A stretch of 64,000 bases of DNA from the sequence record LR756508.1, one strand, 5' to 3'. Below, one piece after another: positions 17,266 through 63,526 of this stretch. A model generated the notes under the pieces. The model searched no databases. It saw nothing but the letters and a program-made list of their open reading frames with translations, and had not been told where the DNA came from. How positions within the stretch are numbered: the stretch's first letter is position 1; each line of letters begins with the position of its first letter. Position numbers and translations under genes: made by a program.

Positions 17266-17297
17266 CGTTAGAATCCAAATGAATCGTGAGAGTTCTC

Positions 17298-32479: not shown

Positions 32480-34204
32480 ATGTCAGACAACAAAGACTTG
32501 CTTGTAGATTATCAACCTCTTGAGTATGATAAGGAGGTAATTAAGGAGTCTATTGATAAAGATGATGGGCCGCTGGTGGTGGAGGGAACCCTCCAAAGAG
32601 CCGACGCAAAAAATCAAAATGGTAGGGTGTATCCAAAGGACGTGCTGAAAGATGAAGCTGAGAGGTACATGAAAGAAAAGGTGAATAAGAATAATGCGTT
32701 AGGCGAATTAGATCACCCTGATTGCCTCAAAAAACATAGCGCACAAGCACTTACGGTGGATGGGTTTAAGTATATATCCAATGTTGAAGTAGGTGAGTCC
32801 ATCGTTACAATTAATCCAGATACTGGCGATGTAGAGATAGAAGAGGTCCAGGAAGTAATTGACGAAGAATATAGTGGACCAATGTATCAGATCAGTTCTG
32901 GTAGAATGGATATCCAGGTCACTCCCAACCATAGATTTCTACTTCTTCCACGAAAAGACTATCCTGACCGTGATCCGTACTGGGTGAATGCAGAAGAACT
33001 ATATGAGAACAGAACCAGTCACAGTAAATCCCGAATTCCAAAAGAAATTTGGGGAGGCTGGAACGGAAAAAGTAATGTAAATGGAACTTCCAAACCACTT
33101 CATGAGAACTTTGCGTTTCCGTCAATCGATTCAGATGTTTTCTTTAAGTTCATCGGAATCTGGCTTGCGGACGGAGATACAGTAACTGACAGAAATGTTG
33201 TCCAACTGCACCAAGTCAAGGAAGAAAGCACTCAAGAAATTCGAACTCTTCTTTCAAAATTCCCGAACGATTTGACCTGGAGTGAAGAAAACAAGGAAAA
33301 TGGTTTCGGAAATACAAAAACAATATTTAGAACCCGAAATTCAGAGCTGTATTCTTATCTTCGAGATAATTTCGGCGAAGACTGTTATTCAAAAGAAATC
33401 CCAGCAGATGTAAAAAATGCACCACCAGAAAAAATCAAGAATCTCCTTGACTGGTTTGTAAAAGGTGATGGAACAGAGTTTGAAACTCAAAGGAGTGACA
33501 CAAGAAGAAGATTCTTCTCCACGTCGGAAAAACTAGTTGATGATCTCCAAGAAATAGCATTGAAACTGGGTCATAATGGCTCTATTCAAGAATTTGATCC
33601 TATGAATGATGCTCCGATTGGAGATCGAAAAATAAAATCAGAAAACAAAGAAAAACTTTACATCTATGAATTTCTCAAAAATGATGGTTATGGATTAGAT
33701 AAGAGGTGTAGTGATATTAAGAGGTTTAATTTTGATGGAAGAGTAACATGTCTTTCTGTTCCAAATGGCACCTTTTACGCTAAAGATGAAAATGGAGCCT
33801 GCTTTTGGACCGGCAACAGCTCAGTAGTAAACCTCAAAAACGTTTCTCATAACGTAATAGACATGGAGTGGGATGGAAATGATCTGAACGGAAAGCTTGA
33901 AATTCTCGATACCCCGTCTGGCGAGATACTTCAAGATCTCCTCGAAGCAGGAATTCGACTTGGAATTTCGTCCCGAGGATTGGGTTCTGTATCAAAAAGA
34001 AGAGATGGAGCTGTTGAAGTTCAAGATGACTACTCGATTGTATGTTTTGATATGGTCAGCTCGCCTAGCACGCATGGTGCATTTATTGAACCCATTAATG
34101 AAGCAGTAGATAGAAGAAGGGTGGAAGAAGCCCAGAAATGGCATTCAGTTGACCGAATGGCACAAGAAATTGTTGGAGAACTTTCTGAAAAATACTCGGT
34201 TTAG
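32480..34204 (+). CDS. gp21: Prohead core protease with intein (about 209 aa after splicing)
   Basis: LQRADAKNQNGRVYP, LGELDHPD, GISSRGLGS, FDMVSSPSTHGA. Confidence 0.95.
   Translation: MSDNKDLLVDYQPLEYDKEVIKESIDKDDGPLVVEGTLQRADAKNQNGRVYPKDVLKDEAERYMKEKVNKNNALGELDHPDCLKKHSAQALTVDGFKYISNVEVGESIVTINPDTGDVEIEEVQEVIDEEYSGPMYQISSGRMDIQVTPNHRFLLLPRKDYPDRDPYWVNAEELYENRTSHSKSRIPKEIWGGWNGKSNVNGTSKPLHENFAFPSIDSDVFFKFIGIWLADGDTVTDRNVVQLHQVKEESTQEIRTLLSKFPNDLTWSEENKENGFGNTKTIFRTRNSELYSYLRDNFGEDCYSKEIPADVKNAPPEKIKNLLDWFVKGDGTEFETQRSDTRRRFFSTSEKLVDDLQEIALKLGHNGSIQEFDPMNDAPIGDRKIKSENKEKLYIYEFLKNDGYGLDKRCSDIKRFNFDGRVTCLSVPNGTFYAKDENGACFWTGNSSVVNLKNVSHNVIDMEWDGNDLNGKLEILDTPSGEILQDLLEAGIRLGISSRGLGSVSKRRDGAVEVQDDYSIVCFDMVSSPSTHGAFIEPINEAVDRRRVEEAQKWHSVDRMAQEIVGELSEKYSV
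32723..33817 (+). mobile_element. Intein with LAGLIDADG endonuclease in gp21 (365 aa)
   Basis: HPD|CLKKHSAQ...CLSVPNGTFYAKDENGACFWTGN|S, with FIGIWLADG and WFVKGDG blocks. Confidence 0.9.
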
Positions 34205-35995: not shown

Positions 35996-36448
35996 ATGCA
36001 ACTTAAAAACAGGTTGACCGAAGCCCTCGGCACCAACACTTTTAGCAAAGAAGCTCCCTTTTTCTACGCTGGCGAAGTTGTAAGTAGGCTCGGCGACGGC
36101 GACGTTGAAGCTATCGAGGTGGGAACCCACGAAGAAAAAGACCGAATAAACATCTACGAGCAGAGGGAAGAGCTAAATGATCCAGATGTTATCCACGACG
36201 TCCGGCTTCTCGTAAAGTCAATAGAACAGGGCGGGGGCGAGGTCGAGCTCGAAGCGAGCTATAGTGCAGAGGTCGAGCGTGAATCTCTTTACGTAACTCA
36301 CGTTTCTCCAATCGAATTTCTAAGCCCAAACATAAACGACTTTTTTGAACTAAGCTTTCGCGAATCAATTCGGCTTCTCGGATCTGATATATACGAAGAA
36401 ATATTTGAGAAGAACAAAAGTGACTTTCGGCGAAGGCTAACACGTTAA
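35996..36448 (+). CDS. Short-leader acidic protein
   Basis: MQLKNRLTE. Confidence 0.55.
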   Translation: MQLKNRLTEALGTNTFSKEAPFFYAGEVVSRLGDGDVEAIEVGTHEEKDRINIYEQREELNDPDVIHDVRLLVKSIEQGGGEVELEASYSAEVERESLYVTHVSPIEFLSPNINDFFELSFRESIRLLGSDIYEEIFEKNKSDFRRRLTR

Positions 36449-36707: not shown

Positions 36708-37027
36708 TGAGATTGAGCGGCAGAAAACTGAAAAAATTGGTCATCGAGGAGCTTCGGGGAGTCCTGAGCGAAGCGTACATGGGGGAGCCAGAGATTGGAG
36801 ATATCGTTCAAGTTCGTGGAGACGATAAGTTTGGAGAAATCACTCATACCGACGATTCTGGCGAAAAGTACTGGGTTTCTTACCACGGCGAACCTAGTAA
36901 TCGTGGCTTGTTTTTTCATCCACGAGACTTAGAAGTTATATACGATAGTCGTTATAACGAATGGACGGACGAAGTTAGGCCAGAGCACAAAAGAGCGTAT
37001 TCTGACAAGTATCTAAGAGATAAGTAA
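36707..37027 (+). CDS. Leader-motif protein with SH3/KOW-like beta domain
   Basis: MRLSGRKLKKLVIEELRGVLSE followed by EIGDIVQVRGDDKFGEI. Confidence 0.55.
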   Translation: MRLSGRKLKKLVIEELRGVLSEAYMGEPEIGDIVQVRGDDKFGEITHTDDSGEKYWVSYHGEPSNRGLFFHPRDLEVIYDSRYNEWTDEVRPEHKRAYSDKYLRDK

Positions 37028-37536
37028 TGGAAATAAACCGAAAACAGCTTAGAGGTCTTATCAAAGAAGAGTTGGAGCGCACTCCGAACTTCAACCGAAT
37101 GGGGAGGTTTGACCACTGGCAGGATTATACCGACCTCTATAATATGAACTATAGGAAGTTTCATGGCGAGGAAGGCTTCAAAGAAGTTTATTACAACGAG
37201 CCATCAAACATAGTTCTGGCGAAACCAAAGGAAGGCACGTTTTCTGAGGACACCTCAGTTGCCCTGTTTGGAGTGCGGCGAGCCCAAGGAATTTATGAAG
37301 ACATGAGACACATTAACTCAACTGCCTTCGGAGTAAAACCTGTTAAACTCTCAGAGAACGAGTGGAATTTGTTTATGGAAAACACCTATAAGGCAATTCA
37401 AGAAACTAACCCGATTTACCTTCTCAACTTTGGGATGATGGACCCGACAATGGACCTTGATCCCCAAGACCAAAATGAATTTAATAGGAGAAAGACTCTT
37501 TCTCGAACTCTTTCATATAACGCTCCTGGACATTAA
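37027..37536 (+). CDS. Leader-motif protein
   Basis: MEINRKQLRGLIKEELE. Confidence 0.6.
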   Translation: MEINRKQLRGLIKEELERTPNFNRMGRFDHWQDYTDLYNMNYRKFHGEEGFKEVYYNEPSNIVLAKPKEGTFSEDTSVALFGVRRAQGIYEDMRHINSTAFGVKPVKLSENEWNLFMENTYKAIQETNPIYLLNFGMMDPTMDLDPQDQNEFNRRKTLSRTLSYNAPGH

Positions 37537-37568: not shown

Positions 37569-38072
37569 ATGAACATCAAAAAAAGTAAACTAAGGAAAAT
37601 TATTCGAGAAGAAATAACGAGAGTTCTGGGTGGAGATTCTCGTCGGCACGGAGACCGGGTGAAAAACAGGGCTCGGAGAATGATTGGAGAGGCCGAGACA
37701 TTTCGATCTCGTGCGGAGGAAGCTCGAAGCAAGAACGACCTGCTTGATATTTTCAAAGATATGGGTAGGTTCATGGATGACAAAAAATTTCTTCGGGCCG
37801 TTGCGCAGGCCATGAGTCGGGATGGACTCTCGCAGTCAATTCAATACATCGATAGGCAGCACCAGTTTCCTCACCGCCGAGAAACGACGTACCGGCAGGA
37901 AGCAGAATCCGCTTCGATGGACGAGTTGATCAGCATCGCCGACCGGATGGGGACGCTTATGGGCGACGAAAAGTTTGCAAACGAGATCGCTATGAGCATG
38001 GGGCGAAGTGAGCTCCGTAATCTTATCCAGTATCTTGATCGACATTATGAGATGACTCCAGCCGAGGTTTAA
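37569..38072 (+). CDS. Leader-motif protein with two internal helical repeats
   Basis: MNIKKSKLRKIIREE. Repeats end IQYIDRQH and IQYLDRHY. Confidence 0.6.
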   Translation: MNIKKSKLRKIIREEITRVLGGDSRRHGDRVKNRARRMIGEAETFRSRAEEARSKNDLLDIFKDMGRFMDDKKFLRAVAQAMSRDGLSQSIQYIDRQHQFPHRRETTYRQEAESASMDELISIADRMGTLMGDEKFANEIAMSMGRSELRNLIQYLDRHYEMTPAEV

Positions 38073-38135: not shown

Positions 38136-38507
38136 ATGAAAAGTTTTAAAATGAACAATCTTAGAAAGGTGGTACAAGAAGAAATCCAAAAACTCCTGAA
38201 AGAGAAAGAAAGGCAGGAGCCTGGAGTCAGTGATAGTGACAGGCGTGCTCTCGATACGATCCGCCTGTTTCTACATAGAAATTATGAAGAGGCAAAGCGA
38301 AACGGAGATGAAGTTGTTGCCTACGAATCTGGAGCGCCCTGGGAAGAAGAAAGATATAAAATTGTAATAGAGCCCTCGGGGCTTGACAGTTACACTTATA
38401 CTTTCGACGTTCAAGAAAGTGATGAGAGGTTTGCTAATGACGCTTACGCAAGGATGCAGAAAGAAGATGGACTTCCGTATATTAAACTCCCTAGAAGATT
38501 TAGATAA
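38136..38507 (+). CDS. Leader-motif protein
   Basis: MNNLRKVVQEEIQKLLKE. Confidence 0.6.
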   Translation: MKSFKMNNLRKVVQEEIQKLLKEKERQEPGVSDSDRRALDTIRLFLHRNYEEAKRNGDEVVAYESGAPWEEERYKIVIEPSGLDSYTYTFDVQESDERFANDAYARMQKEDGLPYIKLPRRFR

Positions 38508-38519
38508 AAAAGACAGATT

Positions 38520-38783
38520 ATGAAAGAAAAAAGACTTAGAAGGTTTATTCGAGAAGAAGTTAAAAACATTATCCAGGAAGAGAATAAAGGGCTTCTTTAC
38601 TCTTACGCTGGCGATATAAATATTTACGATTTGTCTATGCCACCGATGGGAGGCACCGAAGCGCCGCAGTCCGGCAATAAAATTGTAGCTCTTGAGTTTG
38701 ACGGGAATCGCATCGAGCTTACTCCAAATGAGGCAGAATCTTTGTACAATGCGGTCGAGACAATCTATAATTCTCGATCTTAA
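38520..38783 (+). CDS. Leader-motif small protein
   Basis: MKEKRLRRFIREEVKNIIQE. Confidence 0.6.
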   Translation: MKEKRLRRFIREEVKNIIQEENKGLLYSYAGDINIYDLSMPPMGGTEAPQSGNKIVALEFDGNRIELTPNEAESLYNAVETIYNSRS

Positions 38784-47903: not shown

Positions 47904-49538
47904 ATGAATAACTTTGATCTCAGCCAGTTTAAGACAGGTTCTTCTCCGGAGCAGAAGCTCCTGGAGCAGAGCAGAGAGCTTGTCGACAAATGGTCTCCTA
48001 CCGGCCTTCTCGAAGGTCTTGAGGACGACCATGAAGTACATGGCGTATCAATCTTGCTCGAAAATCAGTATCAACAGCTACTCAAGGAGGCATCCCGAAC
48101 TGGAACTAGTGAGGGTTCTGAGGAGTGGAGCGGAGTTGCTCTTCCACTTGTTAGAAGGGTCTTTGGCGAGATCGTAGCCAAGGAATTTGTTAGCGTTCAG
48201 CCCATGAACCTGCCTTCTGGTCTTATTTTCTACCTCGACTTCCGTTACGGCTCTAGCCAGCCAGGATTCGAAGAAGGTGGTTCCGTTTATGGTAAGACTG
48301 GAACGTTCGAAGATGTAGAGGGCGCTCCTTCCGGAGCACTTTACGGATCAGGACGTTTCGGATACTCCGTAAACGACCAGCTTGCCCAAGACGTGTCCCC
48401 TCACGCCATTAACGACGTGACGGACGCAAGGGTGAATTTCGATGAGAACCTGGTGGACAGAACCGGAGATCTCGCTGGAGTAGAGGTAGACCTTCCAAGT
48501 CGAGTAGATACGGAAGGAGTTAGGGCCTTTACTATCGCCGCAGGTGATATTTCCGAATATTACCCTGCTCACACGCGATACGTTCAGGAAAATGGCGACG
48601 GCACTCACCGCGTCGAGTTCATCGTTCTTCCTACGAACTCATCCACTTACGGATATGGTTCTGGAGAGTCCGCAGACGACGTTGACGTGGAGTATCACGT
48701 GCAGCCGCCTGCTTACGACCGTGGAGACTTCGAGGAGCGCGACGACCAGAGCATCCAGAACGCTGGCGCAAGCGACTTCCAGCCACTGGATATTCCTGAG
48801 ATTGACTTTGACCTTTCTAGTGAGCCGATTGAGGCGAAAACCAGAAAGCTCAAAGCAGTCTGGACTCCTGAGCTCGCGCAGGACCTGAACGCTTACCACT
48901 CCATCGACGCCGAGGCGGAGCTTACCTCAATGCTTTCGGAGTACATTAGCATGGAGATCGACCTCGAAATCTTGGATATGCTGATCCAGAACGCTCTTAC
49001 CAAGGAGTACTGGAGCACGCTTCCGGGATACGAGTACGACCCGAACACTGGTCAGTTCCAAGACCAGCGAAGTCACACGGGTACGAAAAACGAGTGGTTC
49101 CAGACCCTTGGAAACAAGATCCAGAGGGTATCGAACAGGATCCACCAGAAAACCATGAGGGGTGGAGCAAACTTCCTCGTTTGTTCCCCAGACGTGGCAA
49201 CCATCCTCGAATCTATTGAAGGATTCAGGGCAGACACGGATGGAACCCAGATGGACTTCGCGATGGGCGTCCAGCGCGTTGGAACCCTAAACAACAGGTT
49301 CCAGGTTTACAAGAATCCTTACTTTGTAAACAACGTGATCCTTGTTGGATTCAGGGGTCAGAACTTCCTTGAGACTGGCGCAGTTTACGCACCGTATGTG
49401 CCGCTCATTATGACTCCAATCGTATATGACCCGAATAACTTCACTCCGCGAAGAGGCGTAATGACTCGATACGCTAAAAAGATGGTCCGTCCAGAGTTCT
49501 ACGGACTCGTAGTGGTTGATAAGCCATCTAGAGTTTAA
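47904..49538 (+). CDS. gp23: Major capsid protein
   Basis: FVSVQPMNLPSGLIF, AKTRKLKAVWTPELAQDLNAYHSIDAEAELTSMLSEYI, GAVYAPYVPL, GVMTRYA. Confidence 0.97.
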   Translation: MNNFDLSQFKTGSSPEQKLLEQSRELVDKWSPTGLLEGLEDDHEVHGVSILLENQYQQLLKEASRTGTSEGSEEWSGVALPLVRRVFGEIVAKEFVSVQPMNLPSGLIFYLDFRYGSSQPGFEEGGSVYGKTGTFEDVEGAPSGALYGSGRFGYSVNDQLAQDVSPHAINDVTDARVNFDENLVDRTGDLAGVEVDLPSRVDTEGVRAFTIAAGDISEYYPAHTRYVQENGDGTHRVEFIVLPTNSSTYGYGSGESADDVDVEYHVQPPAYDRGDFEERDDQSIQNAGASDFQPLDIPEIDFDLSSEPIEAKTRKLKAVWTPELAQDLNAYHSIDAEAELTSMLSEYISMEIDLEILDMLIQNALTKEYWSTLPGYEYDPNTGQFQDQRSHTGTKNEWFQTLGNKIQRVSNRIHQKTMRGGANFLVCSPDVATILESIEGFRADTDGTQMDFAMGVQRVGTLNNRFQVYKNPYFVNNVILVGFRGQNFLETGAVYAPYVPLIMTPIVYDPNNFTPRRGVMTRYAKKMVRPEFYGLVVVDKPSRV

Positions 49539-49721: not shown

Positions 49722-51434
49722 ATGCCAAGAGACTGGAGCAAAGAGAAAAATCCAAATTACGTTGACATACAAAAAGAAGAATTAAAGACAAAAATACTGG
49801 AGGAGTATACCTCCAAAGAACTTGCAGATTATTTCGACGTCAACCAGAACACAATTACAAACAAAGTTCAAAAGTTCTGGAATGCTGGATTAAGAGAAGT
49901 GAGGAAAAACTTGTATGAAGATAACGCTAAGTATGGAAGATGCAAAATTTGTAACCAGCCTCTTGAGTCCAACCAGAAAACTTACTGCTCAAACGAATGT
50001 AAATTTTCCGATGAAGAATACAATCAATCCAGGGTTCCCGATAAGAAAAACAATGAAAATAAAAAGGCCGTTTGTAAACTGTGTGATTACGAGTCTACTG
50101 ACTATAAAAATGTCTCTGGCGCGTTAACAAAACACCTGAACCAGAAGCATAATGGAGATTTTAAAGTCGAAAAACTATTTCAAATTGAAGAGAAAGAAGA
50201 AGTAAGTTATTTGGAATGTCCAGAATGTGATTGGAAGACAAAAGATGTTGAAAACCAATCTGGCTCATTTACGAAACATATTCAAAAACAACATAAAAAT
50301 GTTCTTTCTTTTGTTGAAGATTATCCTTCCACAAAAAGTATTCTACCAGTCGGGAAGTTTAAACGAAAGAAAAGATTAGAAGAGAATGGCGTCAAATGTG
50401 AGATCTGCGGAAAACTATTTGATAAACTTACTAATACGCATCTTAAAAAACATGACATAACCCCTACTGAATATAAAATTAAGTATGAGAGTAAGACCTA
50501 CTCAGAAAACCACTATCAGAAGTGTAAAAAACACTATCATGAGTTTTTGGAAGGAAATGGTGCTATCTTCGTTTCAGAAGCAGAGAAAGAACTCAAAAAG
50601 TTTCTTGAGTCTCTTGAGGTTGATAATATTGAGACTAATGTTCGTAGTATAGACGAAGTAAGTGAAATTGATATATTAGTACCAGACTTTGATCTCGGGA
50701 TTGAATACAACGGCCTGCCTTATCATTCGCAGGGTTTTAATGATAAAGGTAAATGGTGCCACTGGAACAAAACGAAAAAGTGCAGAGAAAATGGAATAAA
50801 CCTTATCCAAATATTTGGTGATCAGTGGAATAACAAAAAAGAAATAGTAAAATCGAGGCTAAAACATAAACTAAACCTTGGGACAAAAACTAAAATTGGG
50901 GCAAGAGATTGTAAGTGTAGAGAAATTAGTAACACTCAGAAACGTTTGTTTTTAGATAGAAACCACATAAGGGGCACTGTAGGCTCAATGGTTTCACTTG
51001 GGTTAGAAAAAGAAGGTGAGCTGGTATCGGTAATGACATTCGGACATTCGAGTTCTAATTACGAACACGAGCTTTCAAGATTTGCCGTAAAACAAGACTT
51101 TGTGGTTCATGGAGCAGCGGGAAAAATGTTTTCGCATTTTAAGAAAAATTACAATTCAAATTCGGTTGTAACGTATTTAGATCTTTCATGGTCTAGTCGA
51201 GATGATAACTTTTACAGTCAATTAGGTTTTGAGTTCGATGGTGAGGTTGATCCTTCTTACTCATACACAAAAAACTACCATAAAAGACTTCATAAATCTA
51301 ACTTTTCAAAGTCCAGTATTAAGAAAAAATATCCAGACCAATACAACTCAAATCTCACGGAGTGGGGGAACATGAAGAAGCTCGGGTTTGATCGAATATG
51401 GGATTGCGGCAAAATCCGTTACGTATGGAAGTAA
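49722..51434 (+). CDS. Free-standing homing-endonuclease-like protein: C2H2 fingers + Vsr/PD-(D/E)xK nuclease + GNAT/Mom-like domain
   Basis: CKLC...HLNQKH, SEAEKEL...EIDILVPDFDLGIEYNGLPYH, ELSRFA...RIWDCG. Confidence 0.75.
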   Translation: MPRDWSKEKNPNYVDIQKEELKTKILEEYTSKELADYFDVNQNTITNKVQKFWNAGLREVRKNLYEDNAKYGRCKICNQPLESNQKTYCSNECKFSDEEYNQSRVPDKKNNENKKAVCKLCDYESTDYKNVSGALTKHLNQKHNGDFKVEKLFQIEEKEEVSYLECPECDWKTKDVENQSGSFTKHIQKQHKNVLSFVEDYPSTKSILPVGKFKRKKRLEENGVKCEICGKLFDKLTNTHLKKHDITPTEYKIKYESKTYSENHYQKCKKHYHEFLEGNGAIFVSEAEKELKKFLESLEVDNIETNVRSIDEVSEIDILVPDFDLGIEYNGLPYHSQGFNDKGKWCHWNKTKKCRENGINLIQIFGDQWNNKKEIVKSRLKHKLNLGTKTKIGARDCKCREISNTQKRLFLDRNHIRGTVGSMVSLGLEKEGELVSVMTFGHSSSNYEHELSRFAVKQDFVVHGAAGKMFSHFKKNYNSNSVVTYLDLSWSSRDDNFYSQLGFEFDGEVDPSYSYTKNYHKRLHKSNFSKSSIKKKYPDQYNSNLTEWGNMKKLGFDRIWDCGKIRYVWK

Positions 51435-51538: not shown

Positions 51539-53473
51539 ATGAGCGACGAAAAGAGAACAACTGAATCTATTGTCTGCCAGATTTGTGAGAAAGAGTATTC
51601 ATTATACGGTCTTTCTAGCCATATTAAACACTCCCACGAAATGAGTGTAGAGGATTATGCCGAAAAGTTTGGGGAGTTTAGAAAGTCCAAGATTAATGAA
51701 AATAATGAAAAGCAGAGAGACGTTCAAAGCATTAAGTGCGAGGAGTGTGGAAAGAGCTATTCTTCTGCAGGAATGCATACGCATTTATTTCACACCCACG
51801 ACATGACGGTAGAGGAATATGTTGAGAAGCACGGCGAGTATAGAAAGAAGCAGAAGAGTAGGAAGAAAAGAAAAGAGAATTCCGATTATCAATGCGAAAT
51901 CTGCGAAGAGACTCTCGTTTCAGACAGGCAGCTAAGTTTTCACGTCCGCAAGGAACACGATTTAATTAAAAAGTCATATCTACTCAAGCACGTCTTTGAT
52001 GGAGAGCACCCAAAATGTGAATGTGGGTGTGGCCAACGGGTTAAAATTCTATCTCACGAGCCGTACAAAAGAGAATATATTTCTGGCCATAACTCGAAGG
52101 GCGAGAGCAACCCAATGTATGGAAAACACCACAACCAGTCCTCGCTAGAAGAAATGCGAGAAGCTGCTATAAGTCGTGATACAGGCAAAAAAAATACAGA
52201 GCCAGAAAGAAAGTTAAAAAGGAAACTTGATTCCTTGGACATTGATTATGAACACCAACATGAAACCGAGTATGGAAGTGTTGATTTCTACCTGCCTGAA
52301 GAAGACCTATTAGTTGAAGTCGATGGATATTATTGGCACCCGAAAGAAAAAACTTCTCTCAATTTTAGGCAACTTGCTGGAGTAATTAACGACTACCGAA
52401 AAGATCAAAATCTTGATAAACTTTTTCGTCTTCGTCTCGATAGTATAGCTGAAATTAGTAAAGTAGAAGATATAAAAAAATACTCTTATAACCTAGATTA
52501 TAACTTTTCATTTCGAGATCCAATCATCGAAGAAGAATATGTGAGTTGGGGGATAGAAAACAAAGGTAAAAAACATATAAGAGACAACATCCACCTTCTC
52601 CTGCGATTTCTTCGGACCGTTATTGCCCAGTTCCCGTATCCAGAATCGAAATATACTCTTGAAGAAATAAAAGAAAAAATTTCAAGTTATGACTATTCGA
52701 AGGTAATAGATGAAGAAAAAAAGATAGTAAAAAACAATGCGTGGTGGATCGGGAACACGTTCTTGAAGTCAATATTCAAGTCCTACTGGAAATCAAGCTT
52801 CAAGGGCGAGCCATCCCCGATTGAAATTTGGAACGACTATGGAAAACTACGAAGTATAATTGAGTATAGGATGGGACTAAATAACAGCGGAGAAGTTTTC
52901 GATTTTTCGCTTAAGGAGGTCCTCCGAGGAATTTCAGCCAGTAGGTCCTCTATTTCATTTTTCAAACCACTCGTTGCCGCAGCGATCTATGATCACTTCA
53001 TTGAGGCCAGCAAGGAGCCAGTTGTTATAGATCCATGTGCTGGGTTTGGAGGTCGAATGCTCGGTTTCAAGTCCGTTTATCCTGATGGCAGGTACATTGG
53101 AATTGAGCCTAATAGCGAGACGTATTCAGAGCTTTTGGAGTTGGCCGAAAAATTCAAAAAGGTAGAGCTCTATAACAAAAAGCAAGAAGAGTTTGATTTA
53201 AGCCAGTTCGATGAAACCGTTGATCTCACTTTCACTTCCATTCCTTACTTCGATAAGGAAGTTTATAGCCAACCAGTTTCATACGATAGTTTTGATGATT
53301 GGAAGGGCGAGTTTGTAGAGAGACTAAAAAGATTTCCGAAACTGCTTGTGAACGTTCCTTTTGAACTCAGCAACTATTTCAACTACGAGGAAACGTATAA
53401 GTTCGTAAACAACGCCTCCCACTTCGAGAGTGAGAAAGACGAAAAGGTCGAGCACCTTTTGAAATGTTTCTGA
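51539..53473 (+). CDS. Zinc-finger/NUMOD3/Vsr-like endonuclease fused to an amino-methyltransferase domain
   Basis: Three C2H2 fingers, NPMYGKHH, VDFYL...VEVDGYYWH, SAM motif VIDPCAGFGGR, and motif IV variant FTSIPY. Confidence 0.75.
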   Translation: MSDEKRTTESIVCQICEKEYSLYGLSSHIKHSHEMSVEDYAEKFGEFRKSKINENNEKQRDVQSIKCEECGKSYSSAGMHTHLFHTHDMTVEEYVEKHGEYRKKQKSRKKRKENSDYQCEICEETLVSDRQLSFHVRKEHDLIKKSYLLKHVFDGEHPKCECGCGQRVKILSHEPYKREYISGHNSKGESNPMYGKHHNQSSLEEMREAAISRDTGKKNTEPERKLKRKLDSLDIDYEHQHETEYGSVDFYLPEEDLLVEVDGYYWHPKEKTSLNFRQLAGVINDYRKDQNLDKLFRLRLDSIAEISKVEDIKKYSYNLDYNFSFRDPIIEEEYVSWGIENKGKKHIRDNIHLLLRFLRTVIAQFPYPESKYTLEEIKEKISSYDYSKVIDEEKKIVKNNAWWIGNTFLKSIFKSYWKSSFKGEPSPIEIWNDYGKLRSIIEYRMGLNNSGEVFDFSLKEVLRGISASRSSISFFKPLVAAAIYDHFIEASKEPVVIDPCAGFGGRMLGFKSVYPDGRYIGIEPNSETYSELLELAEKFKKVELYNKKQEEFDLSQFDETVDLTFTSIPYFDKEVYSQPVSYDSFDDWKGEFVERLKRFPKLLVNVPFELSNYFNYEETYKFVNNASHFESEKDEKVEHLLKCF

Positions 53474-53540: not shown

Positions 53541-53566
53541 AAGGAGTCCGAAAGGACTCCTTTTTT
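53541..53566 (+). terminator. Rho-independent terminator
   Basis: AAGGAGTCC-GAAA-GGACTCCTTTTTT. Confidence 0.85.
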
Positions 53567-53695: not shown

Positions 53696-54439
53696 ATGAG
53701 GTTAAAAGAAATACTTCTTGAAAACGTAAGTGAGAACATATGGAGGAAGTTCAAAGACGACTGCGCTGCGTTTATTGAGATAAACGAGTCGAAATTAAAA
53801 AACGGTTATTATCTCTACAGAGGAACCAGCAGTTACGACCGAAACGTAATTAAAAAAAGATTTCGGCAGAGGGATGAGGTCCACGGGTCAAGCACCAAAA
53901 CTTGGGCTTATGAACATTTTAAACCCAAAGCCTACCCATCAAGAGAAGACATGATTCCAACGTTTGGGGGAGAGATGAGTTATAACGTTGGCAGCGAGGT
54001 TCACCTCGTTTTTCCAATAGACTACAACTACAAGCTCCAGTACACGAGAGGGCTTGATGATTTCAACGACGACGATAATCCAATAGGATACAAAAACTCC
54101 CCTTTCAATATTTTGATGAAAGTTATAGATGACGAAAAGTTTCCTGATTATTTGAGGGAGAAAGCTCGGGCTTTTCGGAGAGAAGGAGGTAAATACGGTT
54201 ACGACGAAATTAGGACTTTTTATGGTAACGTCTGGGACCTGGCGCAAAAGGCAGCTTCCTACGATGAAGACCTAAAAGAAAAGCTTGAGGCGTTCAGGGT
54301 GGAGGTAGACCAGTATTTTCAAAAAAGCGAGGTTTCAAAAGAGATGCCCGAGGAGAAAGAAATCGAGGTCGGGCTTTACGCTCCGCAGGGTTTTTACTAC
54401 GTGAAGCCTGACGTCTTGGAGTATAAGAGTTTGTTTTAA
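53696..54439 (+). CDS. Putative ADP-ribosyltransferase-fold protein, paralog 1 (subgroup A)
   Basis: MRLKEILLE leader; LYRGT...PSREDMIPTFG...VHLVFP...IEVGLYAPQGFYYV. Confidence 0.55.
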   Translation: MRLKEILLENVSENIWRKFKDDCAAFIEINESKLKNGYYLYRGTSSYDRNVIKKRFRQRDEVHGSSTKTWAYEHFKPKAYPSREDMIPTFGGEMSYNVGSEVHLVFPIDYNYKLQYTRGLDDFNDDDNPIGYKNSPFNILMKVIDDEKFPDYLREKARAFRREGGKYGYDEIRTFYGNVWDLAQKAASYDEDLKEKLEAFRVEVDQYFQKSEVSKEMPEEKEIEVGLYAPQGFYYVKPDVLEYKSLF

Positions 54440-54452
54440 CTGAGAACTCGCG

Positions 54453-55298
54453 ATGAGACTTAAAAACGTTTTACTTAAAGAGCAGAAAATAGACGCTTTT
54501 GTAGAGGATTGTTATCCGTTTCTGGCCGAAAATGAGTATCCCCTCGCAAATGGTTTCTTTTTGAAGAGGGCATCGGAAAATAACTATAACGGTTTAACAA
54601 AAAAATCGGCAAGAAAAAGAAAGGGGGTTTTCAGTCCTGATCTTTACTTCTTTTATGAAAAGTATAAACCCTCTAGCGTTCCGCCGAGAAAAGAGCTGCT
54701 TCCTGTCTACGGAAAGCAGATTGTTGAGACTGCATTTCAAGAGGGGTCCTATAATACGTATCTTGTTTTTCCTGTTGGAAGAAACTATAAGCTTTATTAT
54801 CATCCGAAAGTCGGAGACTTTAATTATAACCCACTTCTCTCGAAAAAAAATCTTACTGTAACCCATTGCCATAATAAATTTGCTGCTTACATGGGATTTT
54901 TGTTTGGAAAATTGAGAAAAACAGAAGACTTTGAAATTCCATCCAAATTCAAACGAGCTGTAAGTTTTTCTCGCAATGCCAAGTGTAGCGTTGAGGTAAG
55001 TAAGATTATGGATGTTTATCCGCTGCTTTTCGAGTTTTTGGAAAGCCATTCTTGGGAGGAAATAACCAGGCACATAAATTTGGAATATATGTTTGATACG
55101 AACTTGAAAAAAGATATACAGGCGATCCTTCAAAACTACAAAAACTATTTCGAGCAGTATTTCTCTGGACTTAACCAGACCAGAAGTTTAGAAAAGCCGA
55201 TGATTGGAAGCGAAGTTGGAATGCTTGCTCCAAATGGGTTTTATTACTTGCCAGAAAACGAAAAAGATCTTATTAGTAAAGCGCTTCAAGAGATATAA
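54453..55298 (+). CDS. Putative ART-fold protein, paralog 2 (subgroup A)
   Basis: MRLKNVLLKE; LKRAS...PPRKELLPVYG...TYLVFP...SEVGMLAPNGFYYL. Confidence 0.5.
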   Translation: MRLKNVLLKEQKIDAFVEDCYPFLAENEYPLANGFFLKRASENNYNGLTKKSARKRKGVFSPDLYFFYEKYKPSSVPPRKELLPVYGKQIVETAFQEGSYNTYLVFPVGRNYKLYYHPKVGDFNYNPLLSKKNLTVTHCHNKFAAYMGFLFGKLRKTEDFEIPSKFKRAVSFSRNAKCSVEVSKIMDVYPLLFEFLESHSWEEITRHINLEYMFDTNLKKDIQAILQNYKNYFEQYFSGLNQTRSLEKPMIGSEVGMLAPNGFYYLPENEKDLISKALQEI

Positions 55299-56110
55299 TG
55301 GCAGACTTAAAAGAAGCACTTATTAGCGAGGGCCACTCGGGAAGAAGCAGACCTTTAAGTAGGGAAAGATTCGAAGAAATGAAAGAATCGAAGGCACCTG
55401 GCTATAGTTTAGATAACGACAGAATTTTCCGTGGCATCCGCGGTTTTGGCTATGATTTTGCTATGGTTGATCCAACTGGACACAGGGAACGAAAAAGTGC
55501 CCATGCCCAGACGAATTATTATACTTTGATTATTAACAATAGTTTTGCGTGGAGAAGATATCCGAGGCGAGAACTTTCTTGTACTACAAGTTCTTCGAAA
55601 GCTGCGGGGTATGGCGATGTTTATCTGGTAGTGCCATACGATGGAGTCGAATGGGGAATTTGTCCAGACAAAGACATTTTCTTTTCTTTCGGTAGGCTCC
55701 AAAAAGAAGTTGGATTTGATAACATTGATCGATTTATGAGCGTAATTCGCAGTTTCTTTAGCGAATACCTTGATTCTGTTCCATATGAGAGTGACTTTAC
55801 AGATTTTAAGTTCCACCTGGAAAAACTTGGAGATAAGCTGGCTGAAATTGGTTTCTTTGAGGAAAATTACAGTGACATGTTAAAAGATGGATTTGAAAAC
55901 TTGTGGGGACCTTATAAGAACTCAAAGTTTTTTGAGTACAACGAGTTTGATCAGTTTGTTTTTGATTTAATTGATCCAGAGAAAAATGGTTTTGAAGTAC
56001 AAGAAACTTGGAGTGGAGCACCAGACAACAGGGAAGTGTGGACGGATGGGCCTTGTCTTCTTGTAAGGCTTGCTTTTCTCAAAGAGAATCCAGACGAGTT
56101 GGACTTGTAG
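55298..56110 (+). CDS. Putative R-S-E ADP-ribosyltransferase, paralog 3
   Basis: MADLKEALISE; IFRG...LSCTTSSSKAAGYGDVYLVVP...REVW. Best match to the R-S-E pattern. Confidence 0.65.
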   Translation: MADLKEALISEGHSGRSRPLSRERFEEMKESKAPGYSLDNDRIFRGIRGFGYDFAMVDPTGHRERKSAHAQTNYYTLIINNSFAWRRYPRRELSCTTSSSKAAGYGDVYLVVPYDGVEWGICPDKDIFFSFGRLQKEVGFDNIDRFMSVIRSFFSEYLDSVPYESDFTDFKFHLEKLGDKLAEIGFFEENYSDMLKDGFENLWGPYKNSKFFEYNEFDQFVFDLIDPEKNGFEVQETWSGAPDNREVWTDGPCLLVRLAFLKENPDELDL

Positions 56111-56133
56111 TTTTTAACTTAGGATGAGTTTTT

Positions 56134-56898
56134 ATGAAGTTGAAGGGAATACTTAAAGAGGCAAAAAGTGATCAACTTGTTGGCAAAGTAAAGGAAGATT
56201 GCTCTGACTTTATTAGCGTAAATCGAAGTGCCTTGGAGAGTGGAAATTATCTTATGAGGGGAACCGATAAAGCTTATCGGGGAGACCGAATTGTCAAGAA
56301 AGATTTTAGACTTAGAAAGAAAGTAAAGGGTAGCAATTTTATGACCTGGTTTTATGAAAAATGGAAACCAGATTCCCAACCTTCAAGGCAGGAAATGGTC
56401 CCGACTCAGTTTGGTGAGTTAACGGGAATGTTTAGCACAAAAAATACATTTGCCGTTTTTCCAATTGGAAGTAGGTATAAGCTACATTATACTTCAGAAG
56501 TTGAAGACTTCAATAGCCTTAATCCGTATATTAATAAATTTCTTGATCCGCAGAAGCAGATTGAGAAAGCGAAGTTGAACTATGCCGATCTGCCAGAAGA
56601 AGTAAAAGACGAGTTAAAGCGGGCCATAGATTTGTATATGGAAGAAAAGAGCTGGAACTACGATAAAATTGTTGAGCTTTATGAAGAGCTATGGGAAGTG
56701 CAGAAGTTTTTAGGAAAGTATAGAAATGACGTAAAAGAAGAAATAGAAAGATTAAAAAAGTCTGCAGAGAACTATTTTCAAAACAGCAAATTTACGAAAA
56801 AACTTCCAGGTGAAAAAGGGTTGGAGGTGAATGTTTATGCTCCTGATGGCTGGTATTATGTGGATAAAGATATAACTGAAAACAAACTGATCGGTTAA
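56134..56898 (+). CDS. Putative ART-fold protein, paralog 4 (subgroup A)
   Basis: MKLKGILKE; LMRGT...PSRQEMVPTQFG...TFAVFP...LEVNVYAPDGWYYV. Confidence 0.55.
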   Translation: MKLKGILKEAKSDQLVGKVKEDCSDFISVNRSALESGNYLMRGTDKAYRGDRIVKKDFRLRKKVKGSNFMTWFYEKWKPDSQPSRQEMVPTQFGELTGMFSTKNTFAVFPIGSRYKLHYTSEVEDFNSLNPYINKFLDPQKQIEKAKLNYADLPEEVKDELKRAIDLYMEEKSWNYDKIVELYEELWEVQKFLGKYRNDVKEEIERLKKSAENYFQNSKFTKKLPGEKGLEVNVYAPDGWYYVDKDITENKLIG

Positions 56899-57604
56899 GT
56901 GATTAAGTTCAAAAAACTTCTTTTTGAGGACGGTAGGGTTAACGCGGCGCGAGAAGTAGATAAACTGCTACAAACCCAGTTTCAAAATGACCTACCGAAA
57001 CTCTATAGAGCATCAAAGAGAGAGTTTGAAGCTTCTTATAAAATTTTGAGGTTTGGAGATGAAATTCGAGAACCAAAGGGATCTTCTTATGACGCACAGA
57101 TTATATTAGATGGAGTAGCTGAAGCGGTTAATCCTAATATCCCAAAGAGGTTTGAGTCAAAATTTGCTACGACTGAATATTTTGAAGGAAGTGGGTTAGT
57201 ATTCGGCACAAACACCTACGTGGTGTTCCCAGATAAAAATTCAGATATCGCTAGTTTTTCTGGAGATACAATTGATCTTCGTGGGGACATTGACGCCATG
57301 ATAGCTGACTTTTCTGGAAGGGAGCCTCAATATCCGAAGTTTAAAGAAATGCTGGAGAAAATTCATTCGGTGGACGAAAAGGAATTGGAAAGACGTAAGC
57401 GGTGAACTTGAAAATGGAGGACTTTTTGGAACAAAAATGTTAGAAAGTATTGAGAATTATTTCAAAGCTATGAAACGTGGGGCAAAACAAGACTCAGATG
57501 AAATAATGTTTTCGGGAGATCAATATTTGTATGTCAAACCTGATTTTTTTGATGAGCACTTTCGGAGGTCCGGGGGTGAATGGGAATTAAGACCTGATTA
57601 TTAG
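56899..57604 (+). pseudogene. ART-fold paralog 5 (subgroup B) split by a +1 frameshift
   Basis: Frame 0 (LYRAS...PKRFESKFATT) stops at 57405. The +1 frame encodes IENYFKAMKRG...DEIMFSGDQYLYV...SGGEWEL* to 57604, homologous to the C-termini of paralogs 6 and 7. Confidence 0.7.
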
Positions 57605-57606
57605 TG

Positions 57607-58386
57607 ATGAGATTTAAAAGACTTTTAGATCAAAAAGAAAAACTAAAAAAGATCGAGTCTCTTCTCCAATCTGATTTCCGAGGTTCGCTGTATCCAACAA
57701 TTTATCGAGGAACCCGCAGTTCAGTAGACGTTTTTGACGTCCTGAAAATAAGAAAAGATAGAAAGCCCTCAGGCACCAGACTTGAAGCCCAGGGACTTGT
57801 TGATGCCTATGAAAACAACGTCTATAAAGACTGGCCAAAAAGAAGTGAAAGTAAGTTTGGCTCGCCAGATCGAGTTTCTGCAGGAGGATATGGGCCACAT
57901 GAGGTAGTTGTGTTTCCAGAAAAATCGGCAGATGTATGCTGGATTGAATACGATCCTACCACTGAGTTTTTCCACGACAGTTACAGCGCTTTGAAGACCA
58001 TTATCGATTCTAAAATGTTTGGAGAGTTTTTGGACGTTTTGGAAACAAATGGCTTCGAGAAGCTAAGTCAATTTTTGTATAAAACAGAAAAGTTCTATCG
58101 AGACGAGATAAGTTATGAAAAGTATAACAAGTATCTGAACGATAATATTGAAAGGCTGAGAAGTAAATATGAAGACTTGAAAAACGAAAAGACTGAACTC
58201 CAACATCAAAGAGGAGAGCTGCTGAAGGTTTTTCGGGCTGTTGAAATGTATTTTTCCACGCTTAAAGAGGGAGCAAATAAGGGGGCTTATGAAATTATTT
58301 TTGATGGAGAAAGATATTTGAGGATAAATGCTGACCTGTTTGAAGATAACTTTTCTTGGAGTGGAAAAAGGTGGAAGGTGAGTTAG
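57607..58386 (+). CDS. Putative ART-fold protein, paralog 6 (subgroup B)
   Basis: MRFKRLL; IYRGT...PKRSESKFGSPDRVSAGGYG...VVFP...YEIIFDGERYLRI. Confidence 0.55.
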   Translation: MRFKRLLDQKEKLKKIESLLQSDFRGSLYPTIYRGTRSSVDVFDVLKIRKDRKPSGTRLEAQGLVDAYENNVYKDWPKRSESKFGSPDRVSAGGYGPHEVVVFPEKSADVCWIEYDPTTEFFHDSYSALKTIIDSKMFGEFLDVLETNGFEKLSQFLYKTEKFYRDEISYEKYNKYLNDNIERLRSKYEDLKNEKTELQHQRGELLKVFRAVEMYFSTLKEGANKGAYEIIFDGERYLRINADLFEDNFSWSGKRWKVS

Positions 58387-58452
58387 GTTTTTTTGATATT
58401 TAATATTAAACGAACGATTAAATACAGCTAATTAACTTAAATGTGAGTGCTT

Positions 58453-58671
58453 ATGCCAGCGAAGTCAAAAAACCAGAAGCATTTTTTTCAACTTGCCTTA
58501 GGAGTTAAAACAGGTTCAATTTCTAAAAGTGAGGTTTCAAAAGATGTAGTAGATGCGGCAGAAAGCATGAAAAAGAGCGATTTGGAAAAGTATGCTAAAG
58601 AGCCAGTGAAAGAAAGGGTTTTACACATAATACGCGAAGAGCTACAAAAAATCCTTTCCAACCAGAGATGA
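58453..58671 (+). CDS. DUF3008-like small protein with C-terminal leader-like helix
   Basis: MPAKSKNQ...AESMKKSDLEKYA, then KERVLHIIREELQKIL. Confidence 0.6.
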   Translation: MPAKSKNQKHFFQLALGVKTGSISKSEVSKDVVDAAESMKKSDLEKYAKEPVKERVLHIIREELQKILSNQR

Positions 58672-58801
58672 AACCCAATGAGAAGCCTGAGAGATTTGGA
58701 TAAAAAACTAAGTTTAAACAATAGTATTATTCAGTTTCTAATTCTATTACTTATTTTTCTGTCGGCTGCATATATGTTTATGTTTTAGACTTGACAAAAA
58801 A

Positions 58802-59575
58802 ATGAAGTTCAAAGAGCTCTTAAAAGAGCAGAGCGTCGAAAAATTAAACAAGTTATTGAAAGAGGAGTATAGAAATGATGTTAAAAATCTGGTATACCGA
58901 GGCACCTCTACGTCAGTTGAAAAGTTTGACGTTCGAAAAATAAGAAAAGATAGGACGCCGAGGGATACGCCAGAAATGGTTGAAGCTATTGTTTCAGCCT
59001 TCGAAAATAATTTATATGATTCACAGCCAAAGAGAAGCGAGAGTAAGTTTGGATCTGCTGATAGGTCGGCAGTAAGTCAGTATGGAACCCATCAAGTTCT
59101 GGTTTTTCCAGAAAGAGACGCAGGCTTGAAGTCACTTAAAACAGACTCTACACCTACCTATTTTATGCCAGCTTACCATTCAATTGAGTCTGTTTTGATG
59201 AGCGACCGGTACGATCAGATCTTAAAAGAACTTGCCAGCGAAGGCTTAAAAAATTTGGTTTATTTTTACGGACAAGCTCAAGAATATCAACTTGAGGAGC
59301 TAAATTATGGAAGCTGGAAAGCTTATTTAAATAAAGAGATCAAGAAAATTCTTAAAGATGTAAATAAGGCTTCTTCTCTTGATATTTCTGAGGACGTAGT
59401 AAAAGACATAGCCTATAGTTTTCGAAGTATAGAAAGATATTTCAAGAATTTAAAGGAGAACGTAGGAGAAAGGGACAAGGAAGTTATTTTTGATGGAGAA
59501 ACTTATCTTAGAGTAGATCCCAAATATTTTAAAGATCACTTTATGTGGAGCGGAAATAGATGGCTGCTTTCTTAA
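58802..59575 (+). CDS. Putative ART-fold protein, paralog 7 (subgroup B)
   Basis: MKFKELLKE; VYRGT...PKRSESKFGSADRSAVSQYG...LVFP...KEVIFDGETYLRV. Confidence 0.55.
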   Translation: MKFKELLKEQSVEKLNKLLKEEYRNDVKNLVYRGTSTSVEKFDVRKIRKDRTPRDTPEMVEAIVSAFENNLYDSQPKRSESKFGSADRSAVSQYGTHQVLVFPERDAGLKSLKTDSTPTYFMPAYHSIESVLMSDRYDQILKELASEGLKNLVYFYGQAQEYQLEELNYGSWKAYLNKEIKKILKDVNKASSLDISEDVVKDIAYSFRSIERYFKNLKENVGERDKEVIFDGETYLRVDPKYFKDHFMWSGNRWLLS

Positions 59576-59598
59576 GAAAGTTAGAGTGTGATCGGGTT

Positions 59599-59892
59599 AT
59601 GACTAAACACGAAATTTTATACTACGAAGCCCATAAAAAAGGGTACGTAAACGAAAGTGAAATTAGGTTAGATCAAATTAATTTTCTTACCACTCTGGGC
59701 TACCTGGAAAAAAAGGAAACTGAAGTCCTGGGGGATCTGCAGACAAAACCGAAATTGACTGGTAAAGGAAAGAGGTATATTAAAGTTGTTCACGAAATTG
59801 GGGGTCACGAGAACCTACGGAAATTAACCTTGAAAGAGTGGGATTATTTAGAAAAGAATACAATGTTGCGTAGAGACTTTTTAGCCGAGTAA
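59599..59892 (+). CDS. Small winged-helix-like protein, paralog of the next gene
   Basis: KLTGKGKRYI...EIGGHENLRKLTLKEWDYLE. ATG at 59599 preferred. Confidence 0.5.
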   Translation: MTKHEILYYEAHKKGYVNESEIRLDQINFLTTLGYLEKKETEVLGDLQTKPKLTGKGKRYIKVVHEIGGHENLRKLTLKEWDYLEKNTMLRRDFLAE

Positions 59893-59904: not shown

Positions 59905-60228
59905 ATGACCGAGCACAAAATACTCTGGATTACAAATTTAAGGGGGTATTTTTGTCTTGTTTCGCCAGAAGAAAACTTTGAGGCTGATCTAATTTATGAG
60001 AGAAGAGTCGAGCAGCTTTCAAGAAATGACTTCTTATGGGAGAATGTCGTCAAGGAGAAGGGGCTTATTAGAAAAGATTTTCATCTTACCGACAAAGGTG
60101 ATGTGTATATTCTCCAGGTGGAAGAAATAGGAGTAGAAAATTTGCTTAAATTGACGGAAGAAGAGTGGAACTATATAGAAGATAAGACTCTTTTGAAAAG
60201 AGAGTTTTTGAATAACGATGAAATCTAA
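59905..60228 (+). CDS. Small winged-helix-like protein, paralog of the previous gene
   Basis: HLTDKGDVYI...EIGVENLLKLTEEEWNYIE. Confidence 0.5.
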   Translation: MTEHKILWITNLRGYFCLVSPEENFEADLIYERRVEQLSRNDFLWENVVKEKGLIRKDFHLTDKGDVYILQVEEIGVENLLKLTEEEWNYIEDKTLLKREFLNNDEI

Positions 60229-60951: not shown

Positions 60952-61818
60952 ATGGAAAAAATGCTTAATGTAAGACTGACGAAAGAATTAGAGGAGTTCT
61001 TGGATTCTCGATCTAAGAACAAATCAGAATACGTGAGAGATCTTATAAACAAGGATATGTTGGAAAATAGAGAGATTGATCCTAAGAAGGAGTATGATAT
61101 GTGTTCTGAAGACCTGCTTTATTTTGCCGAAAATTATTGTTATATTAAGAATTCAAATGGAAGTAAGAAGGCATTTGAACCTTACCAGTTCCAAAAAGAG
61201 ATTCTCCAAAATCTGTCTAATAACGAATGGCTTTTGATCGTCAAATCAAGACAGTTGGGGATAACTACAATCTTAGCTATTTACAGCCTCTGGAAAGTTT
61301 TATTCCATTCTGAGATAAATGTTTCTTATGGTTCTCCAAATAAGGATATGAATTCAATCTTTTTAAATGAAAGAGTGTCTTTTATTTATGAGAACCTACC
61401 AGACTGGATGGTAAAGCCAAAGCTACGATCTAAAAGATTTATAAAGGTTTTTCAAAATAGATCCGAGCTCATGGAAATCCCACCGAGAGGTCACAAAGGA
61501 AAAGGCTACGACGTGGCTATTTTTGACGAGGTTTCATTTATACCTGAGTTTGTTAGAATGTGGAGTAGAACTAACATGCAGATAAATCATCCAGATGGTC
61601 AAGTAATTCTTACCACTAACGGGATAATTAAAGAAAGGGAAAACTATGATGCACTAAAAAAGTTTTATAAGAAAAGTCAATTTAAGAACCTGGAGTATTC
61701 ATATCTTGATCATCCAGAAAGAGATGAAGATTATAAAGATGAAATAGTGGAGGGTGGAATTATGACACATGAAAAGTTTCTCAAAGAGCACGGCGGCTTG
61801 GTAGAGATAAAGGGTTAA
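60952..61818 (+). CDS. Ribbon-helix-helix domain fused to a terminase-like ATPase domain (no nuclease domain)
   Basis: MLNVRLTKELEEFL...NKSEYVRDLI (RHH); YFAENYCYI...IVKSRQLGITT...IFDEVSFI parallels gp17 at 17950. Confidence 0.75.
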   Translation: MEKMLNVRLTKELEEFLDSRSKNKSEYVRDLINKDMLENREIDPKKEYDMCSEDLLYFAENYCYIKNSNGSKKAFEPYQFQKEILQNLSNNEWLLIVKSRQLGITTILAIYSLWKVLFHSEINVSYGSPNKDMNSIFLNERVSFIYENLPDWMVKPKLRSKRFIKVFQNRSELMEIPPRGHKGKGYDVAIFDEVSFIPEFVRMWSRTNMQINHPDGQVILTTNGIIKERENYDALKKFYKKSQFKNLEYSYLDHPERDEDYKDEIVEGGIMTHEKFLKEHGGLVEIKG

Positions 61819-63139: not shown

Positions 63140-63199
63140 TTTAAGACTAACTTAAACCACTACTAAAGTCGACTTTAGTAATTCACAGTGAAAGATAAT

Positions 63200-63526
63200 A
63201 TGCAACTTTCCGAAGAAGAGCTTAGAAATATTGTAAGAGAAGAAGCAATTTACGGGGTCAAAGAAAAAGAGATTCTTGACTATTTGGAGGAAGAAATCTT
63301 GTCAATGTATGAGGACTATTCAACCGAGCGAAGCGGTGATCTTCTTCTCGTCAATGACGAAAAAGGAGAAACGTTTGAGATTGCGGTGAAAAAAGCTCTT
63401 GATGTGAACCCAACAGTAGAAGTTCGTTACAGTAAACTGGAAGACTCTAAGTATGCCAGTAGAAAAACGTTCTACCTAAGTCAAGTTGATGAGTTGAAGC
63501 ACACGTTGAAACACCGCCAGTTTTAA
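63200..63526 (+). CDS. Leader-motif small protein
   Basis: MQLSEEELRNIVREE. ATG at 63200 preferred over GTG at 63188. Confidence 0.6.
   Translation: MQLSEEELRNIVREEAIYGVKEKEILDYLEEEILSMYEDYSTERSGDLLLVNDEKGETFEIAVKKALDVNPTVEVRYSKLEDSKYASRKTFYLSQVDELKHTLKHRQF

Follow-up and report, generated by a model that had tools for sequence, protein, structure and literature searches.

A tandem array of putative head-packaged proteins in an uncultured T4-type huge phage

Results

Seven paralogous genes between capsid and terminase

The sequence record LR756508.1 is an unannotated assembly of 484,177 bp from an 'uncultured phage'. We analyzed a stretch of 64,000 nucleotides of this record (positions 124001-188000; in the following called the window, with coordinates counted from its first nucleotide). 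The window is free of N and nearly all of its genes are oriented on the plus strand. It contains a head module of the T4 type with terminase, portal, a Peptidase_S77 protease and a Gp23-type capsid protein, and as judged from the sequence the phage is an uncultured T4-type huge phage. Here we describe an array of seven tandem genes at 53696-59575, which is located between the gene of the Gp23-type capsid protein and a second terminase-like open reading frame (ORF). This location between capsid and terminase genes is found in two related phages.

All seven genes lie on the plus strand; six are intact ORFs of 247-281 amino acids (aa) and the fifth carries one frameshift. The initial annotation of the locus listed seven paralogs of 235-281 aa. 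The seven tandem genes and their positions stand, whereas the length of 235 aa can be obtained solely by reading the fifth gene across two frames. Gene 1 (53696..54439, 247 aa) begins with the leader MRLKEILLE (residues 1-9), and its product matches member 4 in BLASTP with an E of 5e-50. It is followed by gene 2 (54453..55298, 281 aa; leader MRLKNVLLKE, residues 1-10), with a weak match to phrog_15932, and by gene 3 (55298..56110, 270 aa; leader MADLKEALISE, residues 1-11), which matches phrog_12810 (E 8.5e-35), has 41 homologs and, to judge by these matches, is the mainstream type of the family. Gene 4 (56134..56898, 254 aa; leader MKLKGILKE, residues 1-9) precedes the frameshifted gene 5 (56899..57604; leader MIKFKKLLFE). 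The leader of gene 6 (57604..58386, 260 aa) is MMRFKRLLDQKE, with Asp for Glu; the protein matches phrog_11975 (E 3.3e-12) and, by BLASTP, member 7 (E 5e-61). Gene 7 (58802..59575, 257 aa) starts with MKFKELLKE (residues 1-9).

The order of subgroups proposed for the array, A-A-C-A-B-B-B, was confirmed by BLASTP: genes 1, 2 and 4 form subgroup A (E 1e-22 to 1e-50 among each other), genes 5, 6 and 7 subgroup B (E 1e-9 to 1e-61), and gene 3 stands for subgroup C. The two pieces of gene 5 were treated apart throughout and no joined sequence was used; each piece, searched separately, matches the subgroup B profile. The subgroups were linked by hhalign, with a probability of 96.9% for C and B (E 1.8e-10), 87.3% for C and A (E 3.8e-6) and 79.5% for A and B (E 1.5e-5). 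By these sequence comparisons the seven genes are one family of true paralogs.

For comparison we used a related phage whose nucleotide identity is about 83% for the larger part of the array and rises to about 90% in the first 900 bases or so. The ratio of non-synonymous to synonymous substitution rates (dN/dS) of the intact members ranged from 0.07 to 0.13 (gene 1, 0.07 at 93.5% amino acid identity; gene 7, 0.10; gene 2, 0.13), and the capsid protein gave a dN of 0.004 and a dN/dS of 0.02. These values indicate that the intact members are working genes, which evolve faster than the capsid protein. The related phage has an intact gene 5 and a gene 4 that is divided into two ORFs, and behind its counterpart of gene 1, before that of gene 2, an unrelated ORF of 360 aa (L002 8055-9137) is inserted. 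Because breaks and insertions differ between two related phages, single members of the family are expendable.

Conserved core, predicted fold and extent of the family

The ordered skeleton of motifs described in the initial annotation is real; it was recovered in an alignment of 23 sequences from all three subgroups and in 170 family representatives. In the alignment (residue numbers of the first array gene) R42, R59, P81, R83 and P107 are invariant and G43, V105, F208 and E224 nearly so; R59 had been overlooked before. Across the 170 representatives conservation amounts to 100% for R42, R59 and R83, 99% for E224 and P81, and 98% for P107. The Glu-containing tetrapeptides given for the seven genes were all found, the one of gene 5 in its second frame. 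Three invariant Arg residues together with the Glu suggest a common ligand or partner.

Structures were predicted with AlphaFold2 (AF2) for gene 3 from an alignment of 41 sequences (predicted local distance difference test, pLDDT, 89.2; predicted template modelling score, pTM, 0.86) and for gene 1 from 48 sequences (pLDDT 85.9, pTM 0.82). The order of elements is common to both models: strands with Arg-Gly and P-x-R come first, four to six helices follow, and after these there are three strands with the Glu on one of them. A helical insert of about 90 residues lies between the two halves of the core, and the variable helical insert proposed earlier is seen in both models. A Foldseek search of 350,542 PDB chains with the two models returned no match at E<=0.001 (best E 0.067 and 0.82, template modelling (TM) scores below 0.2). 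Among predicted viral structures the gene 3 model gave 29 matches at E<=0.001, all from huge phages, namely Atu_ph07, uncultured marine phages and what look like proteins of the Salicola phage SCTP-2. The models point to an alpha/beta core whose fold is absent from the PDB. This conserved core could be a binder of a common partner or ligand, or an enzyme of new fold, and the variable insert may set the specificity.

Relatives were found by tblastn in Atu_ph07, RsoM2USA, SCTP-2 and LR756502. A full HMMER search with a profile of all groups matched 5,603 clusters (50% identity) at E<=0.001 and 1,549 at E<=1e-30; the matched clusters are mostly 245-290 aa long and the match begins at residue 1. 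Pfam holds no model for the family. Of 48 members, 42 match phrog_12810, 28 phrog_11975 and 3 phrog_15932, which are PHROG families of unknown function; members 1 and 4 of subgroup A match none of them directly. LR756508.1 itself encodes at least 26 members, all on the plus strand, seven in the window and 19 in five places elsewhere (L010-L015); one of the clusters outside the window, at 327-337 kb of the record, comprises nine members within some 10 kb, of which seven are directly adjacent to each other. In IMG/VR we counted 113 members in 38 loci, with two or more members in 22 loci and a maximum of 11 per locus. Known domains were detected neither in seven longer family members nor in a multi-copy protein of 2,645 aa.

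A short N-terminal leader

The short leader noted in the initial annotation is present in all seven array genes. In six of them it ends with (L/I)-x-E at residue 9-11; gene 6 has Asp at this place, and its counterpart in the related phage has a leader with L-K-E. Read from the N-termini, 25 of the 26 copies in the genome show the (L/I)-x-E leader, and Glu is found at position 9 in 80% of the 170 family representatives across many phages. In an alignment of the 25 intact paralogs of the genome, mean pairwise identity is 42% in the first ten columns and 20% elsewhere; only the P-x-R region reaches the level of the leader. In the gene 3 model residues 1-12 have a pLDDT below 50, which indicates a disordered leader. 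Versions of the leader in other phages include MRWHQLIE and MKWHQLTE (Atu_ph07), MINSYKYFLLE (a metagenomic phage) and MTTFKEYLTE (RsoM2USA).

The leader pattern matches 22 of the 26 family ORFs of LR756508.1, 10 of the 773 other ORFs on the plus strand and none of the 701 ORFs on the minus strand. Eight of the ten matches outside the family lack the family core and are unrelated to each other. One of these eight, a Zeta_toxin/AAA_33 P-loop kinase of 244 aa with the leader MLKLKDLIKE, is encoded inside a family cluster (LR756508.1 330232-330966; L012 45232-45966). The equivalent kinase of Atu_ph07 is fused to the family domain and was found in virions. In the window, an ORF of 150 aa in the head module (35996..36448, plus strand) is unrelated to the family and has the same kind of leader (MQLKNRLTE). 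Outside the window the leader is borne by seven further unrelated ORFs (175-420 aa), and one of these has a faint sub-threshold match to Tpt1/KptA (E 0.053).

In T4, gp21 cleaves after the Glu of L/I-X-E, and the internal proteins are targeted to the capsid by their propeptides of ten residues (PMC9026906). Asp as the last residue of the propeptide stops trimming but not targeting in T4 (PMC9026906), and by analogy this effect may bear on the leader of gene 6.

A second class of leader was observed in at least 12 small ORFs of the head module, which have nothing in common but an N-terminal helix of about 20 residues, such as MKIQEQKLRGIIKEEI or MNIKKSKLRKIIREEI, and are unrelated in their remainders. 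ORFs of this class are located at 16212-16532, 17286-17891, 28404-28838, 29398-29910, 31070-31492, 31841-32383, 36462-36707, 36707-37027, 37027-37536, 37569-38072, 38136-38507, 38520-38783 and 63188-63526. Several of these leaders contain (I/V)-x-E. The proteins may be prohead-core or other internal proteins with a different tag.

Virion detection and domain fusions in relatives

The genes gp53-gp63 of Atu_ph07 are 11 tandem members of the family, in one of which the domain is present twice. All 11 proteins were detected in purified virions by electrospray ionization tandem mass spectrometry (ESI-MS/MS), with 3-31 unique peptides and a coverage of 12-46% (Attai et al. 2018, Supplementary Table S5, PMC6102473). 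These virions were purified by polyethylene glycol (PEG) only, and the protein list also contains replication proteins (PMC6102473). The word 'paralog' is absent from the main text of the paper, which thus appears not to treat gp53-gp63 as a family. RsoM2USA has three family members, and its proteomics covered only the ten strongest bands.

In some relatives the family domain is fused to a second domain. In Atu_ph07 gp53 a Zeta_toxin domain (E 1.5e-14) is attached behind the family domain. A metagenomic phage contig of 135 kb has six tandem members, and in the last one (452 aa) ART-PolyVal comes after the family domain (E 9e-9, scoring above the cut-off of Pfam). An appended domain was found on none of the seven array proteins. 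The fusions to Zeta_toxin and ART-PolyVal suggest that the family domain serves as a constant, head-associated unit within a set of delivered proteins that is diversifying.

The array proteins are not recognisable ADP-ribosyltransferases

The initial annotation had interpreted the seven proteins as R-S-E ADP-ribosyltransferases (ARTs) and had named structure prediction followed by Foldseek as a check. We found that the array proteins are not recognisable ARTs. None of the seven matches an ART family in Pfam, PHROGs or NCBIfam, and none was found among the relatives (Pfam at E<=10 for 41 relatives; PHROGs for 48). Profile searches of PDB sequences returned no ART and only helical noise. By Foldseek, neither of the two AF2 models matched the split beta-sheet of ARTs, with no ART enzyme among the 50 best PDB matches listed for the gene 1 or the gene 3 model. 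Aligned by hhalign with a genuine ART-PolyVal domain, the family profile reached a probability of 0.4%. T4 Alt, ModA, ModB and C3-like toxins did not appear among the database matches; their own sequences were not used as queries. Membership in the ARTs was rejected on the combined evidence of sequence families, PDB profiles, the two fold searches and hhalign.

At the level of single residues, Arg and Glu are conserved. Subgroups B and C, like the majority of the family (S in 83% and 91%), have the motif S-x-S after P-x-R; subgroup A lacks it, and no Q or E is found two residues before E224. Two of the leader-bearing ORFs mentioned above looked faintly ART-like by eye or Tpt1-like (E 0.05); PDB searches with them returned nothing, and they were dismissed.

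Other genes of the head module

A full-length large terminase is encoded at 17950-19572 and a portal ORF of 1,386 aa at 21763-25923. HNH-endonuclease-like matches in the middle of the portal ORF suggest an inserted mobile element or intein. The prohead protease of the T4 gp21 type (32480..34204, plus strand; Peptidase_S77, PF03420, E 5.4e-26; phrog_207) is interrupted by an intein, with matches to LAGLIDADG_3 and Intein_splicing, and is presumed to be the enzyme that trims the leaders. The major capsid protein of the Gp23 type (47904..49538, plus strand) matches phrog_138 with an E of 6.7e-76, and its 99% identical counterpart matches PF07068 (Gp23). Homing-endonuclease-like ORFs occur at four separate places in the head module (19900-21681, 34244-35944, 49722-51434 and 51539-53473), the last of which combines zinc fingers with a Vsr-like nuclease domain.

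Directly before the array a terminator-like hairpin with a 9-bp stem and a subsequent T run (53541..53562, plus strand; a consensus match only) would close the upstream unit. The T4 late-promoter octamer TATAAATA gave 5 matches, with 3.4 expected, and none of them is located before the array. Within the array, between genes 6 and 7, there is a further ORF of 74 aa (58447..58671, plus strand), which does not belong to the family and has no leader; it reaches 22.7 bits with DUF3008, where the cut-off is 24, and its amino acid identity in the related phage is about 92-93%. Directly downstream of the array two small paralogous ORFs (59560-59892 and 59905-60228) match no family. They are 37-56% identical to each other's counterparts and are conserved in the related phage with 97% and 92%, respectively. 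The second terminase-like ORF (60952-61818) comprises the ATPase half only; two terminase matches are found likewise in Atu_ph07 (gp109 and gp110).

Discussion

Weighing of the possible roles

We consider it probable that the array proteins are head-packaged internal proteins of T4-type huge phages. The initial annotation had pictured them as a virion-packaged, leader-trimmed and diversified arsenal. This part of it gains comparative support from the T4-type leader, the Peptidase_S77 protease, the presence of the leader on unrelated proteins, the virions of Atu_ph07 and the effector fusions. Several observations weigh against packaging. For this uncultured phage, packaging, cleavage and ejection are argued from relatives and from the analogy to T4. 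The isoelectric points of the array proteins range from 4.8 to 9.1, whereas T4 internal proteins are uniformly basic, and with this range a role as basic DNA-coating proteins could be discarded. The motif (L/I)-x-E is short and also occurs near the N-terminus of 14 of the 60 other plus-strand ORFs of the window. The leader is partly kept across the whole family in many phages, so it could be a feature of the family and not a portable tag. Finally, one distant member is solitary and adjoins Thg1/PhoH-like genes, not head genes.

Alternatively, the proteins could serve solely to build or assemble the large head, as components of prohead core, scaffold, decoration or an inner-body-like structure, and have no action on the host. 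Their location in the head module, the virion detection in Atu_ph07 with a coverage of up to 46%, the strongly conserved core with its low dN/dS and the existence of families of paralogous inner-body proteins in giant phages (PMC9026906) would all agree with such a role. We nevertheless regard it as unlikely: the copy number varies from 1 to 26 per genome, members broken in one phage are intact in a close relative, Zeta_toxin and ART-PolyVal are fused to the family domain, a Zeta-like kinase has the same leader, and the inserts are variable. These features fit a dispensable, diversifying cargo better than a fixed architecture. That the proteins remain unpackaged in the cytoplasm, with an N-terminus that is simply the first helix or a translational feature and with carry-over as the source of the Atu_ph07 detections, seems very improbable to us. 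The N-terminus in the model of member 1 does run on into a long helix, the mode of virion purification and the replication proteins in the Atu_ph07 list would allow carry-over, and the distant member among non-structural genes points in the same direction. However, all 11 Atu_ph07 members were detected, most of them by 7-31 peptides, the same leader occurs on unrelated proteins and is disordered in the model of member 3, and in two related phages the array is flanked by capsid and terminase genes. It is highly improbable that each of the seven is an R-S-E ART which modifies host targets with NAD. The proteins have the order of an ART, with an invariant strand Arg, S-x-S after P-x-R (in B, C and the majority of members) and, on a late strand, an invariant Glu; ARTs are often packaged in the heads of myoviruses (PMC9503650), and the array of the metagenomic relative ends with a true ART-PolyVal protein. 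Against this stand the failure of every family, PDB and fold search described above, the lack of the Ser motif in subgroup A and of Q/E-x-E, and the fact that in the relative the ART domain is added to the family domain and does not substitute for it.

Proposed mechanism and implications

With head packaging as the favored explanation, the following course can be proposed, in which the steps of targeting, trimming and ejection are inferred, as is an action on the host. The proteins would be made along with the head genes. The N-terminal leader of 9-12 residues, by its sequence and by analogy to T4, would bring them into the prohead core, where the gp21-type serine protease would cleave after the Glu of the terminal (L/I)-x-E. 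The mature proteins of about 28-32 kDa would remain in the DNA-filled head, a location shown for the homologs of Atu_ph07, and, upon infection, would leave it together with the DNA. To judge by the fusions to kinase and ART domains, the cargo may have a role in host takeover or counter-defence.

A more far-reaching reading, which we put forward as tentative and rather doubtful in its full extent, is that huge T4-type phages possess a large capsid-targeting system, in which an S77-trimmed leader loads dozens of proteins. Its main cargo would be an undescribed family, comprising about 5,600 clusters, which combines an invariant Arg-Arg-Arg-Glu site with a fold that has no example in the PDB; this family would be a new class of delivered enzyme or binding module diversified via its helical insert. 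If the favored explanation of head packaging is right, about 4% of the 484-kb genome codes for proteins of the head interior, namely at least 26 paralogs and other leader-tagged proteins, compared with a handful in T4. Being unnamed, absent from Pfam and without a solved structure related to its fold, a family of this size marks a considerable gap in phage biology. The leader would then provide a simple sequence rule to predict head cargo in uncultured huge phages. In addition, a tempting annotation as ARTs is corrected here as unsupported.

Comparison with known systems

The array proteins resemble IPI, IPII, IPIII and Alt of T4, whose capsid-targeting propeptides are trimmed by gp21, in the short leader ending with (L/I)-x-E, the S77 protease encoded in the genome and the location in the head gene region. 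As in the T4 internal proteins, divergent mature parts follow a conserved leader, and members are dispensable and variable between relatives. In contrast to the T4 proteins, to which our searches returned no relationship in sequence or fold, the array proteins have a higher mass of about 30 kDa and are not uniformly basic; they have one conserved core fold in common, and their copy number is far higher (at least 26 per genome).

A further close parallel is the array gp53-gp63 of Atu_ph07, annotated as hypothetical, with an analogous leader and a tandem arrangement. Its proteins are true homologs (hidden Markov model (HMM) E 1e-9 to 1e-61; Foldseek E down to 4.5e-18, TM 0.73). The Atu_ph07 array includes the two-copy protein and the Zeta_toxin fusion, whereas the seven proteins of the window are all single-domain proteins.

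The arrangement in relatives, with the family domain N-terminal to Zeta_toxin or ART-PolyVal, is reminiscent of MuF-fused and polyvalent effector proteins (PMC9503650). Unlike in these systems, neither a MuF nor a polyvalent-protein domain was detected; a second domain is missing from most members, including the seven of the array, and the variation is found in the internal helical insert. With the R-S-E ARTs (T4 Alt, ModA and ModB, and the C3-like enzymes) the array proteins share the linear order of Arg, Ser-rich strand and Glu and a possible packaging into the head. They differ from these enzymes in that no profile or fold match was obtained, subgroup A has no Ser motif, Q/E-x-E is absent, and the helical insert of about 90 residues splits the core.

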